The notes under the pieces: model-generated
Told to the model about the DNA's origin: nothing
The model's database searches: none
What the model saw: the letters and a program-made list of their open reading frames with translations, nothing else
Assembly (NCBI GenBank): GCA_965603825.1
Contig: CBFDEM010000059.1
Span: forward strand, 3,430 to 67,429
DNA: 64,000 nt
Source: Blepharisma stoltei ATCC 30299
Lineage: Eukaryota; Protista; Ciliophora
Reading direction: 5' to 3'
Shown: one piece after another, positions 41,051 through 64,000 of the stretch
Layout of the letters: every line of letters starts with the position of its first letter
How positions within the stretch are numbered: position 1 is the stretch's first letter
Made by a program: the position numbers and the translations under genes

Positions 41051-42544
41051 ATGAGAAATCGAAAAGAGTATTATAGAAATTTCAACATCATCAAAACAAT
41101 CTTTTTCAATTAGAAGACTTTAGTGCAAAAAGTAGAATTTAAGCATTATAGCAAAGGCTGCGGTTATCCAAAATACGCAATCATGAAACAATATCATGAA
41201 ATCAAATCAAATGAGCGCATCAAAAAAGAGGCCAAAATCCTTCAATTCGTGGGGAAGCTTCACAAAAACATTGTCCAATTCTACCATCACATGGAAATAA
41301 AGAAAAAAGTACTAATTTTCATGGAGATCTGCAGTCAGGAGAGTCTTGAAAAAGTAATTATGCGTAAAACAGGTGAATACTGGACTGAAGACTTCCTGCT
41401 AAAAAAATTCGCAACGATAACAAATGTCTTGGCTTTGCTCCATTGAAAAACAATAGATGTGGCGCACAGAGACTTAAAGCCACAAAACATTTTTGTCTGT
41501 GAAAATGATGAGTGAAAGATCGGCGATTTCGGAGGCGCCAAAAGAAGATATGTGACGTGCAATAATCTCAACACAATAGAAGGGACTGAAAACTATATGT
41601 CACCATTAATGCTGGAAAAGTGAAAAGAAGGACCCAAAAGCTCTGAAATTGATCCAAAGAAAGAGGACGTGTATTCGTTAGGTAAAACATTTTATGAAGT
41701 TTTGACAAAAAATATAAACTCCACATTCGAGGAAGGTGAGGCAGAAAATCGGGAAAAAATAAAAGCAGAGATGCTCGGGAAAAAGTATAGCGAAGAGCTC
41801 ATCAAAATCATTTTAGAGATGGTTACTCATGATCCTAAAATAAGGCCTACTATGAATGAAGTCCATGAAAAAATCAACCAGCTTATAGCTCGAAGATTAA
41901 CAATGGCTCCTGCTTATTTAGAAAACCAAATTGAGATTCAAATGGAAGAAAAGAAAGGGTTTGCCCGTGAAAGTGAGGATATTTTTAGCCTTGAGGCTAT
42001 AAGTGAAATAAAAATAGTTCCTATCTCTTCACAATGTCAAAGCCAAATGCGAGTGGAAGAAGAAAAGGTGTCTGCTCGTGAGGGCAATAACGTTTTTAGC
42101 ATTGAATCTTGACATGAAAGTTCCATAGAGGAAAGAAAAAGAATTGAAGCTCTAATGGATATTGATAGCACAATGCAAGGGTGGCTAAAAGAGTATTTTG
42201 TTAGCAGATCAATTGAATTTCCACTTACTAGTGAAACAGAAAGCTCTGAAGCAATTGACCAGAGCAGCTTCTCAACAGATAATTTAGCTACTGATAATAG
42301 AATAGCAGAAAGCCTTTTTTCTACCAGACCAGCAAATCAAATCACAGAGCCAAGCAGTCCTGAACTAAGTAATAATATAAAATGCCCTAATTGCTGGCAG
42401 ATACAGCATTTTGAAATGTTTAAGGCTTTTGTCTCCACATCCTTAGATGATATCAAAGTGAATCCGACAGATATTTATTGCATCATCTGTGGAAACAAAT
42501 TTCCAGAAGATTTTATCAATGATTTTCTAGCGCATAAACAATAA
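41051..42544 (+). CDS. Paralogous Ser/Thr kinase with Cys-rich tail, copy 2; one in-frame TAG at 41111-41113
   Basis: AIMK, HRDLKPQNIF, KIGDFG, GTENYMSP, DVYSLG; tail CPNC...CIICG; single frame throughout. Confidence 0.8.
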
Positions 42545-42851
42545 ATTACAAGCCAACTGAGAAACTAATGCTACACTTTGAAGGATTAAGAAAAAGAAGA
42601 TTTATGATAATTTAACATTTATATATCAATAAAAATTAGCATTTCTCCCGCTCTATAATATTATAGCAATGACATTTTATCAATTCGCCTTATAAATATA
42701 GATTTTATAATTCCATAGTAAATTTCTTGACGACCTTGGATTTGAAGACTGGGAGCTATTTAAAAATATTTTTGATAGTCTAAAGTAATTTTAACCTTTT
42801 TCATCTATTTCTCAAAACTTAAATGAGTTTTATTTATGCTAATTTTAATAA

Positions 42852-44747
42852 ATGATGGACGAGCTTAGAAATTCTTCAGGAGCATTGCCAGCTCATTTTA
42901 GAAGGCATTCACAAAGGAGATTCACAGAAGCCAACGCTGAACATTTCGAAACTGAGACAGTCAAAATGACATTAAATTCTTTGCCTAAGCTTCCAGATGG
43001 TCAACGGCTTGGGATTTACAGCCTTTTTGCAGTCTATGCAAATTCTAGCGACATCAATGCAAACATTCCTACCACATTAATTAGAATTGACAACGAGTCT
43101 TTATATTTACTAAAAACAAACGAGCATGGCAAAATTTCTTCTCGTCCTTGTCGTGATGATGATTTTTTCCATCCTTTAGAGACTAAAAAAGGAGCAACTT
43201 ATTTTTACAAGACCCTTTATAAAGAAAGCACTGTATTTAATTCAAGAAAAAGCGCTGAGCTTTTCTGGAAGTCATCTAAAGACTGGCCAGCTTTAATTCA
43301 AACCTGCATCCAATCTAAAACGAAGCCGCCTTCAGTTACAAGAGCACTGTGGAGGGCAGGAATGAAAACAAGATACTACACCATCATAAATCGTCAGCAG
43401 CTTAACCAAGATCCAAAAGCTCCTAAAAAGTGCACAATGCCGAGCATGTATCATAGAAAAAGTCAAGTAGATTTCAAGTACATCAATATGATTCACAGAA
43501 CTTCTCGATCTATCAACAACCCTTACAAAGTCAACGTTACAACTCGAAAAAGCTTTGATGATAAGAAAAAGCTTGACCGTGCCGCTACTTTACAGAGCCG
43601 AGAAAAGCCAGCTCCTGATCCTCAGGAGAATTTAGGTAGCCAAAATGAACTAATTGTAAACACAAGGGCTCCAGAGAATCTTCTCGTAGTAGAAGACCCT
43701 ATAAAGGAAAATGACTTAGAGCCACTAGTTGATGAAATAATTGATTTTTTGAATATCAATATTTACAAAGACCAAAAGCTGATAGGAATTGTGCTTGATT
43801 TCATTAGAAATCAAGACGAGCAGTGGTTTCTGCTAGACTGCAAAGAAATTTCAACAGTAAGTAACTACGCCGTAATTAAAAATAAAAGGAAAGCACAGAT
43901 TATCGGAAAAGAGACCAGAACAAGGCTCAGTATTGACACAACTAAGCTGAAATTCAAAAGCCACAAGACTGAGACTGACGAAGACATTGACGAAAAACAA
44001 TCCTGCCCATTCATCATGAGATCTCCTCCTCCGCCGCCATCTCCAAGCATGACTAAAAAATCAGCCCAAGATCTTGTCGAGCGCTGAAACAAAATAAATG
44101 AAAAGCTTGAATCAGTGATAAGCAAAAGTCTCCCTAATAAATTAAAAAATGCAAGTATAGAAGAACAGAGCATCAAGGCTTACCAAACAAGACTTACAAT
44201 GAAAAACAGCATGCCTGATAGTGAGCAATCCAGCGTCAATGATATTTCCCCATTGGCCCCACCCACGTCAAATTCCTTATGGTCAGATGAAAAAGATGAG
44301 CATATTAATAAATGCTTAACTGATGTAATAGAAAAATTCGAAGAAATGAATATGAATAAAGAGCTGCTGAAAGTAAAAAAACAGAATTTAATCGGGAAAT
44401 ACGGAGGGGACGAGTTTTGGACGATGTTTATTGATAGCTTATATAAGAAAATCATGTCGACTGGCTCTCCGTTGAAAAAGCATTTTTTGAGCTCAGATTT
44501 GTCAATGATTACCAGTGGGATGCATAAGGTCTTTAACGGCTGTGCGAGTCTGCAGTTTCGAAGGAAAATTAAAGCGATTCATGAAAATATGGGGATTCTT
44601 GAAAGTGAGTTCGCGATTTATTCAGGGTTTTTTGAAGACACACTCAATGAGTTTAACGTAGAAGAGGGAGATAAAGAAATGATTATGTCTCAGATAAGGC
44701 TAATGAAAAGCTTGATATGTCAGCCACTGAGTCAGCAAAGTAACTAA
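42852..44747 (+). CDS. ATP-grasp-like N-terminal domain + C-terminal group I truncated haemoglobin domain, copy 1 (631 aa)
   Basis: Two same-frame ORFs joined by TGA. C-terminus LIGKYGGDEFWTMFIDSLYKKIM..LKKHF..DL..VFNG..IKAIHENMGILESEFAIYSGFFEDTLNEFNV follows the 2/2 globin pattern. N-terminal IPTT, ALIQ, GIVLDFIRNQDEQWFLLDCK resembles ATP-grasp. Confidence 0.82.
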
Positions 44748-45223
44748 TTTTTGAGTAATTAATGCTTGATCCATTATAAATAATTTTATAATAAATTTAT
44801 TGCGATATAAGCGGAGATATTAAGGAGGGATGAAGGTCTTTATCATAGATGCATATAAAAGCTGAAAGAAGATCTAATTAAATTGGTTATGACAGAATTA
44901 AAAATATTATTGTGACTAGCATTAATTTATAATTTTTTAAAAGGCAATTTAAAATCTTAAATAAAGGGAATAGTTGTTAATAAAGACACCTAGAAAAGTT
45001 TAATTAGTATTTTCCATGCTTTATTCAATCTGATAGCATCAAAATATCCATTTTGTTTTATAATGATATAATAGCTGGCGAATAATAGTTATTGTTAGAT
45101 CATCTAAAATTCCCATAAATTTTCAATTAAATACCAAATTCTCCTGTGAGAATGCTAAAATGAACAATGCATAGAAAATCCATATTTCTGATGGTCCTGG
45201 ATAAATAAAAGATCCACAAATCC

Positions 45224-47131
45224 ATGGACGAACACAAAATTCTCCCAGCGAGTTTATCTTTCCCATTTAAGCGGACATCGATAAAAAGCGTCACAACAGC
45301 CATGAGCAGCCATTTGGAAGAAGAGTCTCTTAAGAGAAACCTCAGTAATCTGCCCAATCTTCCAGATGGCCAGCGACTCGGCATATACAGTCTTTTTGCA
45401 GTATATGCAAATTCGAGTGACATTAATGTAAACATACCAACAACTCTAATCCGAATAGACAATGCAGCCTCACTTTACCTTCTAAAAACAGATGAAAATG
45501 GCACCATCACCTCACGAGCCTGCAGTGACAATGATTTCTTCTATCCTGATCGAAATACAAAAACCTCAAGGCGTGATGTCTTTTTCTATAAAACTTTATA
45601 CAGAGAAAGTATCCTGCTTAACTCTCGCGAAAGCGCTGAGTTCTTCTGAAAGTCCTCAACAGACTGGCCAGCCATGATCCAATGTTGCGTCCAGTGCAAA
45701 TCCAAGCCGACTTCTGTTACAAGAGCGATTTGAAGGGCAGGTCTAAAAACCAAGTACTGCACCATCATAAACCGTCAACAAATGAAGCACTCCAAAGGAG
45801 CTAAAAAGCCAGCGGCCTATCAGAAGAAAAAAAGTCTGTCCATTTTGGGAGATTTCAAGTACACTAACATGATTCTCAAAACCTCAAGGTCAGTTAACAA
45901 TCCATTCAAAGTCAATATGACAGCCCGTGCCAGCATTTCTGAGAAGCCAAAACTCGAAAGGACACTGTCAATGAAAAACCAAGAATTCAGAAATCCTGAT
46001 AGCCAGCATGGGCTGATTGTCAACACCAAAGCTCCAGATAGCATACTTGTGGTTGAGGATCCTATTAAGGCTGGAGACCTAGATCCAATTGTGGCAGAAA
46101 TCGTTGATTTCTTGAATATCAACATTTATAAGAACCAGGAGCTAAAAGGGATTGTGCTTGACTTTATCCATGATAAAGACTATAAATGGTACCTGCTAGA
46201 TTGTAAAGAAATTTCGACACACAACCGGTCTCCGTCTATCAACAGCATGCGAAAAGGCCAACCGCGTAGCAAAATCAATAAGTCAAGGCAAAGCTCAGAA
46301 GTGGAAACAGTCTCTACAAGCAGCAGAAAAAGCTCAGAAAGTTCTCCGCTAAAGTATCGGTCATCCCCGATCGCTATAAACATTTCAGAAGAAAAACAAG
46401 CTTGCCCATTCGTAATAAGGTCTCCTAGACCGCCTCCAAGCCCAGCCAACAAGTCTACACAAGGAATAGTGGAGCGCTGGAATCGGGTGAACCAGAGGCT
46501 TGAGCAGATCTTGAATCTGAAGCCTTTTAATGAAGTTGCATGTGCAGATATCGAAGAACAAAGCATCAAATCATACCAAACCCGGTATTGCTTAAAGAAC
46601 ATTGATTTTGGGGAGCCATCCAGCGGCAGTGACAAGTCTCCTCACCTTTCTCCTCCCACTTCTAATGCATTGTGGACTGATGAAAACAATGACCACATCA
46701 ATCGATGTTTTACTGATGCTATCGGCAGAATTGAAGAAATGAACATGAACACTGAGCTTTTGAAGGTAAAAAAGCAAAACCTGGTAGGCAAGTATGGAGG
46801 GGATGAGTTCTGAAGCAACTTCACACAGAGCTTGTATAAGAAAGTCATGTCCACTGAGTGCCCACTACGAAGATATTTCACAAAAAACAACATTGACATG
46901 ATTTTGAATGGGATGAATAAAGTCTTCAACGGATGTGCCACGCTACAGTTTAGGAGGAAAATCAAAGCTGCCCATCAAAACTTGGGGATTTTGGAAAAGG
47001 ATTTCAATATTTATTCAGCACTTTTCGAAGACACTTTGAATGAGTTTAATATTGAAACTGAAGATAAAAGCATGATCATGTCACAGATCAGATCAATGAG
47101 ATGCCTAATTTGCCAAGCTCCGAACCAATAA
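45224..47131 (+). CDS. ATP-grasp-like + truncated haemoglobin fusion, tandem copy 2 (635 aa)
   Basis: Single frame with TGA=Trp; TGA codons align with TGG in copy 1 (EFFW, RAIW, DEFW). LVGKYGGDEFW..LYKKVM..LRRYF..IKAAHQNLGILEKDFN. Confidence 0.82.
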
Positions 47132-62759: not shown

Positions 62760-63520
62760 TTAGGGTGTTAGGGTGTTAGGGTGTTAGGGTGTTAGGGTGT
62801 TAGGGTGTTAGGGTGTTAGGGTGTTAGGGTGTTAGGGTGTTAGGGTGTTAGGGTGTTAGGGTGTTAGGGTGTTAGGGTGTTAGGGTGTTAGGGTGTTAGG
62901 GTGTTAGGGTGTTAGGGTGTTAGGGTGTTAGGGTGTTAGGGTGTTAGGGTGTTAGGGTGTTAGGGTGTTAGGGTGTTAGGGTGTTAGGGTGTTAGGGTGT
63001 TAGGGTGTTAGGGTGTTAGGGTGTTAGGGTGTTAGGGTGTTAGGGTGTTAGGGTGTTAGGGTGTTAGGGTGTTAGGGTGTTAGGGTGTTAGGGTGTTAGG
63101 GTGTTAGGGTGTTAGGGTGTTAGGGTGTTAGGGTGTTAGGGTGTTAGGGTGTTAGGGTGTTAGGGTGTTAGGGTGTTAGGGTGTTAGGGTGTTAGGGTGT
63201 TAGGGTGTTAGGGTGTTAGGGTGTTAGGGTGTTAGGGTGTTAGGGTGTTAGGGTGTTAGGGTGTTAGGGTGTTAGGGTGTTAGGGTGTTAGGGTGTTAGG
63301 GTGTTAGGGTGTTAGGGTGTTAGGGTGTTAGGGTGTTAGGGTGTTAGGGTGTTAGGGTGTTAGGGTGTTAGGGTGTTAGGGTGTTAGGGTGTTAGGGTGT
63401 TAGGGTGTTAGGGTGTTAGGGTGTTAGGGTGTTAGGGTGTTAGGGTGTTAGGGTGTTAGGGTGTTAGGGTGTTAGGGTGTTAGGGTGTTAGGGTGTTAGG
63501 GTGTTAGGGTGTTAGGGTGT
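62760..63520 (+). repeat. Telomeric repeat (TTAGGGTG)n = (CCCTAACA)n, ~95 units
   Basis: Perfect 8-mer array with the G-rich strand running toward the window end; matches the repeat known from heterotrich ciliates (Stentor, Blepharisma). Confidence 0.97.
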
Positions 63521-63544
63521 TAGGTGTTAGCGTTATACTTTAGT

Positions 63545-64000
63545 AACTTTATAACTGTTAACTTTATAACTTTATAACTTTATAACTTTATAACTTTATA
63601 ACTTTATAACTTTATAACTTTATAACTTTATAACTTTATAACTTTATAACTTTATAACTTTATAACTTTATAACTTTATAACTTTATAACTTTATAACTT
63701 TATAACTTTATAACTTTATAACTTTATAACTTTATAACTTTATAACTTTATAACTTTATAACTTTATAACTTTATAACTTTATAACTTTATAACTTTATA
63801 ACTTTATAACTTTATAACTTTATAACTTTATAACTTTATAACTTTATAACTTTATAACTTTATAACTTTATAACTTTATAACTTTATAACTTTATAACTT
63901 TATAACTTTATAACTTTATAACTTTATAACTTTATAACTTTATAACTTTATAACTTTATAACTTTATAACTTTATAACTTTATAACTTTATAACTTTATA
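63545..64000. repeat. (ACTTTATA)n 8-mer array distal to the telomere, ~55 units
   Basis: Follows a short scrambled junction (63521-63560); same 8-nt period as the telomere. Confidence 0.9.

Follow-up and report, generated by a model that had tools for sequence, protein, structure and literature searches.

A tandem gene pair of Blepharisma stoltei predicted to join an ATP-grasp-fold domain to a C-terminal truncated haemoglobin

What kind of protein is encoded when a globin and a ligase-like fold appear to share one reading frame, and what might such a protein do for the cell? This question is raised by two tandem genes in a stretch of 64,000 nucleotides from the heterotrich ciliate Blepharisma stoltei ATCC 30299 (GenBank assembly GCA_965603825.1, contig CBFDEM010000059.1, positions 3,430 to 67,429 of the forward strand; hereafter the window). 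An earlier reading made from the letters only, here called the sequence-only reading, had proposed that both genes fuse an ATP-grasp-like domain to a truncated haemoglobin (trHb), in a candidate gas- or redox-sensing protein. Our analysis indicates that the C-terminal ~115 amino acids are a group-1 2/2 truncated haemoglobin, as judged from profile comparison and structure prediction, and that the N-terminal ~290 are predicted to adopt an ATP-grasp fold with a degenerate Mg site.

Gene structure and genetic code

Both open reading frames (ORFs) lie on the same strand and are intact once UGA is read as tryptophan, which is the code of B. stoltei according to its published genome (PMC9942806). 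Translated in this way, they yield the two intact paralogs of about 630 residues that had been proposed (Table 1); the products share 59% identity in an alignment and match exactly two database proteins of B. stoltei (P0001 and P0003, from GCA_914767885.1, contig CAJZBQ010000059.1). Gene 1 has a single in-frame TGA, at codon 412 within the inter-domain linker, and gene 2 has three, at codons 142 (45647-45649), 170 (45731-45733) and 530 (46811-46813). Every in-frame TGA aligns with a tryptophan of the paralog (TGG was checked at 412, 142 and 530), and the alignment column of codon 170 (W170) is tryptophan in 47 of 47 family members.

The selective constraint on the genes could be estimated from another tandem pair on B. 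stoltei contig 58, the second gene of which (P0002) is 76% identical to gene 2. The comparison gave 0.13 nonsynonymous differences per nonsynonymous site (pN) against 0.74 synonymous ones (pS, saturated), and the globin showed the lowest pN of the three protein parts (0.087), which points to purifying selection on both domains.

Since the frames are interrupted under the standard code, one could suppose that the TGA codons are real stops and that the locus gives rise to separate or truncated products, or holds pseudogene remnants. As far as sequence analysis reaches, this supposition is refuted by the known code of the organism, by the placement of the TGA codons at conserved tryptophan positions, including the fully conserved column, by the purifying selection that persists downstream of them and by the Stentor homolog P0046, which carries both domains in a single protein. 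The claim that TGA hides the fusion under the standard code holds for gene 1, where the codon falls in the linker; it does not extend to the public annotation of B. stoltei, which already applies the right code and contains the full-length proteins as unnamed or hypothetical entries.

The two domains and the linker between them

The globin is recognized through its family. In a Pfam search of the separate ORF pieces of both genes, the Bac_globin model PF01152, which the sequence-only reading had named for a check, was unmatched even at E<=10 and only noise-level matches were returned. A phmmer search of the Protein Data Bank (PDB) with the single C-terminal piece of gene 1 placed Mycobacterium tuberculosis HbN first, at only E ~0.6. 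With a profile of four paralogs, the eight best PDB matches were all group-1 trHbs, the best being that of Chlamydomonas eugametos (1uvx, E=7e-4, aligned over its full length). A profile of 55 globins of the fused family reached the Tetrahymena pyriformis trHb (3aq5) at E=2e-10; its 24 best matches were again all group-1 trHbs, and group-2 proteins appeared only at E>0.3. Moreover, positions 530-642 of the full-length profile matched many proteins of 115-123 amino acids among 1.84 billion representatives (E=1e-11 to 1e-5), and six of the seven stand-alone matches that were scanned passed PF01152. Four family members (P0067, P0068, P0105, P0023) scored 16.7-24.5 bits against this model, whose cut-off is 21, and P0067 alone passed.

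The AlphaFold model of P0001:470-631, built on the family alignment, has a mean predicted local distance difference test score (pLDDT) of 86.4. Compared with the PDB by Foldseek, it matched HbN, THB4 and the trHbs of Paramecium and Tetrahymena with target-normalised TM-scores of 0.70-0.76, and the 13 best matches comprised 12 group-1 trHbs and THB4 (target-normalised TM-scores 0.65-0.76), with a probability of 1.00 in each case. The profiles, the Pfam-positive trHb relatives and the modelled fold thus support what had been proposed for this part of the protein.

The motifs cited for the globin (KYGG, LYKK with Tyr B10, HF/YF with Phe CD1 and KAIH/KAAH with His F8) were all found. All 55 family members have the proximal histidine F8, which is the sole invariant globin column; G518 is kept in 45, G519 in 48 and Phe545 (CD1) in 45 of the 55, all of them present in both window genes. 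The spacing between CD1 and F8 in the family consensus is that of the Tetrahymena trHb, and three residues of the consensus CD loop are missing from both window genes. It is because of this deletion that the distal residues had been misplaced: Ile553 and Met557, proposed as apolar E7 and E11, lie three residues, or one helix turn, too far along, while the statement that these positions are not Gln holds in either register. In group-1 trHbs, polar residues at E7 and E11 (typically Gln) form hydrogen bonds to the ligand, a feature that is typical and not strictly defining. In the fused family these columns are mostly apolar, and neither window gene has the polar distal pair. A special role of Cys623, near the C-terminus, was considered and rejected, because 35 of 55 members have Cys in this column and most of the others Val or Ile, as expected of a buried apolar position.

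Set beside well-known group-1 (N) trHbs, namely those of T. pyriformis (3aq5) and Paramecium caudatum (1dlw), HbN of M. tuberculosis (1idr/1s56) and THB1/THB4 of Chlamydomonas, the Blepharisma domain has in common with them the 2-on-2 fold, the Gly-Gly after helix A, Tyr B10, Phe CD1, His F8 and a significant profile similarity. It differs from them in its setting, since those proteins are stand-alone (116-136 amino acids) whereas in the present case the globin makes up the C-terminal fifth of a chain of ~630. Furthermore, the E7/E11 pair is Gln/Gln in those proteins but Leu/Thr in gene 1 and Ile/Leu in gene 2, and the window proteins have the shortened CD loop and fall below the PF01152 threshold.

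The atypical distal residues and the failure of the single-sequence Pfam search would fit a globin that has kept its 2/2 fold as a helical interaction module and has lost haem binding. We regard this as highly unlikely, as the only column without any exception is the proximal histidine itself, Phe CD1 and the Gly-Gly motif are retained, and no other part of the protein has as low a pN as the globin.

The two domains are joined by a disordered linker of ~140 residues, which is rich in Ser and Pro and variable in both genes, as had been noted. Besides the CPF motif listed in Table 1, a second island (ERW..N..L....IEEQSIKAYQ) is conserved in the closer paralogs. Between the linker and the globin, a long helix is predicted for gene 1 (residues 10-40 of the model, pLDDT ~80).

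For the N-terminal domain, the evidence comes mainly from structure comparison. The motifs pointed out earlier (NIPTTLI, WPA.IQ and GIVLDFI...W.LLDCKE) are indeed present. The AlphaFold model of P0001:1-350, based on 47 sequences, has a mean pLDDT of 77, with values above 90 in the core (amino acids 45-180 and 275-337). Against the PDB, Foldseek placed three chains of DC4 (dDC4/pDC4), a subunit of the trypanosomatid outer-dynein-arm (ODA) docking complex, far ahead of all others (E=4.6e-9 to 2.2e-8); these are chain 5K of 9y6s and of 9e78, from the doublet microtubule of Leishmania tarentolae and named 'distal DC4 / ODA dDC4' in the PDB, and chain 7c of 9e5c from Trypanosoma brucei. The next matches (E=3e-3 to 4e-2) were MdnC, LysX/ArgX, ligases of ribosomally synthesised and post-translationally modified peptides, ITPK1, tubulin tyrosine ligase (TTL), synapsin, D-Ala-D-Ala ligase (Ddl) and RimK. 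The 50 best matches were all DC4 or ATP-grasp proteins, most of them with a probability of 0.9-1.0, and the distance between the best DC4 match (4.6e-9) and the best enzyme (3e-3) indicates a likeness beyond the generic ATP-grasp fold. Structure prediction of each half, which the sequence-only reading had suggested, thus gave a trHb fold C-terminally and an ATP-grasp fold N-terminally. The expectation of an ATP-grasp or TTL-like domain with altered catalytic residues was borne out as to the fold and the altered Mg site; the closest solved relative is, however, DC4 and not TTL.

In searches by sequence, profiles of 47 and 19 N-terminal domains ranked dDC4 first in the PDB (E=0.25 and 0.1, respectively), both through the same two motifs, ilQ.fI.p....iRv.W and VL.F...W.LL.C, which DC4 and the N-terminal domain have in common; a 4-sequence profile matched nothing in the PDB. 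Pfam searches with all 47 domains revealed no shared family and no ATP-grasp or TTL model at E<=1. DC4 has likewise been described as ATP-grasp-like (PMC7617938), and the part of it aligned here has no canonical catalytic site. It differs from the Blepharisma proteins in having no globin, and in a Tyr at the position where the family keeps the near-invariant Asp (D316).

Conservation within the domain is concentrated in a few columns: K120 (K/R in 44 of 47), Q150 (46), R164 (46), W167 (47), D316 (D/E in 47), F317 (47) and W325 (45). In the AlphaFold model K120, Q150, R164 and D316 lie on the strands expected from the ATP-grasp fold, and they are presumed, from strand order and the TTL motifs, to stand for the Lys that binds phosphate, the hinge Gln, the Arg and the first acidic ligand of the metal in TTL-type ATP-grasp enzymes. 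The sequence after W325 reads F-L-L-D-C-K-E; position 328 is aliphatic (L/I/V) in 47 of 47 members, 329 is variable, C330 is kept in 40 and 331 is K/R in 35. The Mg-binding E-x-N motif of the last strand is replaced by L-(D/variable)-C-K, and the conserved Lys is not followed by a glycine-rich loop.

These residues bear on the possibility, close to the ligase-like protein named in the sequence-only reading, that the domain might be a working ligase: a TTL-like or other ATP-grasp amino-acid ligase, acting for example on tubulin, with a non-canonical metal site and under control of the globin. It would account for the fold, for TTL among the Foldseek matches and for the conservation of Lys, Gln, Arg and Asp where the nucleotide site is presumed to lie. 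The domain indeed has the same overall fold and strand order as TTL and TTL-like (TTLL) enzymes, MdnC, LysX, RimK, Ddl, ITPK1 and synapsin; in contrast to the ligases, it has no E-x-N, the motif that holds Mg2+ in ATP-grasp enzymes, no glycine-rich loop, no Pfam match in any of the 47 members and a disordered insert of 90 residues. Moreover, the TTL matches are about a million-fold weaker than those to DC4. An active ligase is therefore unlikely in our view, and, with the Mg site missing, less likely than either of the two explanations weighed in the next section.

Within the insert of gene 1, amino acids 207-228 (43470-43535) show the motif DFKY.N.I..TS.S.NNP.K.N, which is strongly conserved in closer paralogs and may be a binding motif that folds upon a partner.

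Table 1. Features of the two genes and their neighbourhood (positions in the window; UGA read as Trp)
Feature	Position	Strand	Residues	Remarks
Gene 1 coding sequence	42852..44747	+	631 aa + TAA stop	P0001
ATP-grasp-fold (DC4-like) domain, gene 1, predicted	42984..43862	+	aa 45-337	AlphaFold, Foldseek, column counts
Conserved residues of this domain, gene 1			K120, Q150, R164, W167, D316, F317, W325	L328-D329-C330-K331 in place of E-x-N
Insert within this domain, gene 1	43392..43661	+	aa 181-270	low model confidence, variable length
Ser/Pro/Thr-rich variable linker, gene 1	43863..44285	+	aa 338-478	
CPF.(I/M)RSP motif in linker, gene 1	44004-44027	+		conserved in close paralogs
TGA read as Trp, gene 1	44085..44087	+	Trp412	paralog codon TGG
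Long pre-A helix before globin, gene 1	44286..44378	+	aa 479-509	~31 residues, hydrophobic spacing of 3-4
Group-1 truncated haemoglobin domain, gene 1, predicted	44388..44726	+	aa 513-625	
Globin residues, gene 1			G518-G519, Tyr531 (B10), Phe545 (CD1), Leu550 (E7), Thr554 (E11)	
Proximal histidine (F8) codon, gene 1	44580-44582	+	His577	
Spacer between the tandem paralogs	44748..45223	.		476 bp, intergenic
Gene 2 coding sequence	45224..47131	+	635 aa + TAA stop	P0003
ATP-grasp-fold (DC4-like) domain, gene 2, predicted	45353..46225	+	aa 44-334	alignment to gene 1, local hidden Markov model match
Conserved residues of this domain, gene 2			K123, Q153, R167, W170, D313, F314, W322	
Ser/Pro/Thr-rich linker, gene 2	46226..46678	+	aa 335-485	
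Pre-globin helix, gene 2	46679..46771	+	aa 486-516	by alignment to gene 1
Group-1 truncated haemoglobin domain, gene 2, predicted	46781..47119	+	aa 520-632	
Globin residues, gene 2			Tyr538 (B10), Phe552 (CD1), Ile557 (E7), Leu561 (E11)	
Proximal histidine (F8) codon, gene 2	46973-46975	+	His584	
Upstream neighbour, protein kinase	41183-42544	+	453 aa	Pfam Pkinase, precomputed matches
Antisense ORF	46180-46899	-	239 aa	wholly inside gene 2

Possible function of the fused protein

We lean towards the view that the globin is a haem-based ligand or redox module and that its partner is a DC4-like pseudo-ligase able to bind a nucleotide, which the globin would control or which would position the globin, possibly on microtubule structures of the cilium. 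The globin would bind haem b via His577 in gene 1 and His584 in gene 2, with a distal pocket made of Tyr B10 and apolar or small residues at E7 and E11, and the ligand of the haem (O2, NO or CO) or its redox state would be passed through the helix and the linker to the ATP-grasp-like module. The near-invariance of Lys, Gln, Arg and Asp at the presumed nucleotide-site positions makes it probable that this module has kept nucleotide binding; a canonical ligase is unlikely because the E-x-N motif is gone, and the module might instead act as a regulated binding or docking module. The resemblance to DC4 suggests a possible place on ciliary or cortical microtubule structures, and the many paralogs might be copies that are tuned or placed differently. 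The proteins would then use haem to sense gases or the redox state, perhaps in the cilium.

Several points weigh against such a pseudo-ligase sensor. Enzymatic roles (NO dioxygenase, nitrite reductase) are commoner among truncated haemoglobins than sensing, and DC4 is not known to take part in signalling. Tyr531 (B10), which both window genes have, is found in only 38 of the 55 family members. Sequence by itself gives no significant link between the N-terminal domain and DC4, and the Foldseek TM-scores of this link are moderate (0.43-0.59), in part owing to disorder in about 130 of the 350 residues modelled. Finally, the equivalence of the nucleotide-site residues is presumed from TTL motifs and strand order and not from residue-level superposition.

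In the main rival explanation, the trHb is a tethered enzyme (such as an NO dioxygenase, nitrite reductase or O2 scavenger), the DC4-like domain is its non-catalytic anchor at a given structure such as the axoneme or cortex, and no signal passes between the domains. HbN of M. tuberculosis, the top fold match, and other group-1 trHbs are NO dioxygenases. Furthermore, a disordered linker of ~140 residues fits a tether better than an allosteric coupler, the Mg site has been lost, and DC4, the closest structural relative of the N-terminal domain, is a structural docking subunit, located on the coiled coil of DC1/DC2 and in contact with a dynein heavy chain (PMC7617938); DC4 orthologs have been reported from other flagellates as well, including Chlamydomonas (PMC11971395). 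However, a pure anchor would not need the near-invariant K120, Q150, R164 and D316, the last of which is Tyr in DC4, and the globin lacks the polar residues which, at E7/E11, normally stabilise O2 once it is bound. We consider a tethered enzyme possible, if rather doubtful, and prefer the haem-controlled pseudo-ligase. A more specific form of sensing, in which the proteins are haem sensors associated with a DC4-type docking complex of the cilium, the trHb reading O2 or NO and altering dynein docking or activity via the ATP-grasp-like module, is quite unlikely.

It is chiefly by way of chimeric globins that haem proteins have become sensors, and nearly all known cases are bacterial and 3-on-3. 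The globin-coupled sensors (HemAT, DosC) likewise consist of a globin, a linker and a second module, and their globins were among the weak Foldseek matches. They are bacterial and archaeal proteins with an N-terminal 3-on-3 globin and a C-terminal transmitter (MCP, GGDEF or kinase), whereas the Blepharisma globin is 2-on-2, C-terminal and joined to an ATP-grasp-like partner, so that the protein does not have the layout of this sensor class. Chimeric and multi-unit truncated haemoglobins are already known (PMC7475203); examples of the chimeric kind are a trHb-antibiotic monooxygenase of Streptomyces and a raphidophyte nitrate reductase with a 2/2 haemoglobin. There, too, the trHb is a module of a larger protein, with a different partner domain. 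Another large chimeric globin associated with cilia and flagella is the metazoan androglobin, in which a calpain-like domain is combined with a circularly permuted 3/3 globin and which is tied to ciliogenesis (PMC11077535). Its domains are unrelated to those of Blepharisma and no homology is implied; an analogy would exist only if the DC4 link reflects location.

A full-text literature search returned no paper that joins a truncated haemoglobin with ATP-grasp or with Blepharisma, and a literature search for the Stentor coeruleus member SteCoe_12330 found nothing. We thus found no description of a fusion of an ATP-grasp/DC4-like domain with a truncated haemoglobin, which in kind belongs to the chimeric globins. 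Although large and under selection, the family escapes standard domain annotation. Control of the ATP-grasp-like module by the haem state, if it exists, would amount to a novel type of gas or redox signalling in eukaryotes and could give a molecular handle on the oxygen responses of large ciliates. Should the more specific ciliary reading be true, there would be a direct pathway from gas to ciliary beat in heterotrichs, with paralogs tuned or placed differently along cilia or membranelles. Were the globin no more than a tethered enzyme, the family would still have been defined, a DC4-like ATP-grasp-fold domain would have been detected in ciliates by structure prediction, and clear constructs would be at hand for spectroscopy and for RNA interference in Stentor or Blepharisma.

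The gene family and its genomic surroundings

The full-length profile matched 188 proteins at E<=1e-3 among the 1.84 billion representatives, and a local domain scan of the best 150 of these 188 found both domains, in the same order, in ~54 proteins. The named members are at least ten B. stoltei proteins, some of them in tandem arrays, and S. coeruleus SteCoe_12330 (699 amino acids), so that the family is so far named only from heterotrich ciliates. The remaining members are proteins from gene-dense eukaryotic contigs in metagenomes. A word-indexed homolog search with the N-terminal domain alignment added merely two short environmental fragments, and in the environmental contigs L004-L006 neither telomere repeats nor taxonomically informative features were found. 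A Sec6-like gene adjoining an environmental family member matched only metagenome proteins.

In a tree of 99 globin domains (54 fused, 25 stand-alone and 20 multi-unit), the 54 fused domains stand together on one side of a branch with a support of 91 in the Shimodaira-Hasegawa-like approximate likelihood ratio test (SH-aLRT), which fits a single fusion event. The fusion appears to have arisen once, in a tree that, with only 120 alignment columns, is weak in detail. The full-length profile also reached very large multi-unit truncated haemoglobins of Perkinsus olseni (P0066, P0154 and P0157, up to 2375 amino acids); ten Bac_globin units were detected in a representative of 1386 amino acids.

Further observations concern the arrangement of the genes in B. 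stoltei. Beside the pair on contig 58 there is a gene of 321 amino acids (P0023, L001:10795-11760, minus strand) which consists of linker, helix and globin and has no ATP-grasp-like domain. On contig CAJZBQ010000022.1 (L002:1-14377) at least five members lie head to tail on one strand, and the annotated products are of 672, 686, 663, 643, 690 and 658 amino acids.

The GCA_914767885.1 record of the contig studied here (L003) is not colinear with the window, as it holds four extra segments of ~517, 80, 352 and 71 bp, inside or at the start of the two genes (window sites 42848-42856, 43176-43177, 43523-43534 and 45405-45406) and flanked by direct repeats of 9, 2, 12 and 2 bp, respectively. The window is free of these segments, and the ORFs are intact only in their absence. 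They look like germline-limited internal eliminated sequences (IESs), and the public record is probably a combined assembly of macronuclear genome and IESs, as mentioned in PMC9942856. P0002 is interrupted by 734 bp (L001:8781-9514) with poly-C/poly-G terminal inverted repeats (aaggattccccccc ... ggggggggatcctt), and comparable interruptions occur in further paralogs of L001 and L002. Long introns in the paralogs on other contigs were considered and rejected, since the public records carry IES-like segments; the 734-bp segment, too, is more probably an IES of transposon origin than an intron.

The window is AT-rich (GC content ~0.27-0.39). The antisense ORF inside gene 2 (Table 1) is most likely merely mechanical. 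Near the end of the window, positions 62760-63530 hold a telomere-type array, in which TTAGGGTG, the Blepharisma telomere unit CCCTAACA (PMC9942806) in permuted form, is repeated 96.5 times, and a different 8-mer array (TTATAACT, at least 58 copies) follows directly at 63533-64000 and runs off the window. Possible explanations are a telomere array in an internal position, a join made during assembly or a satellite of the subtelomeric kind.

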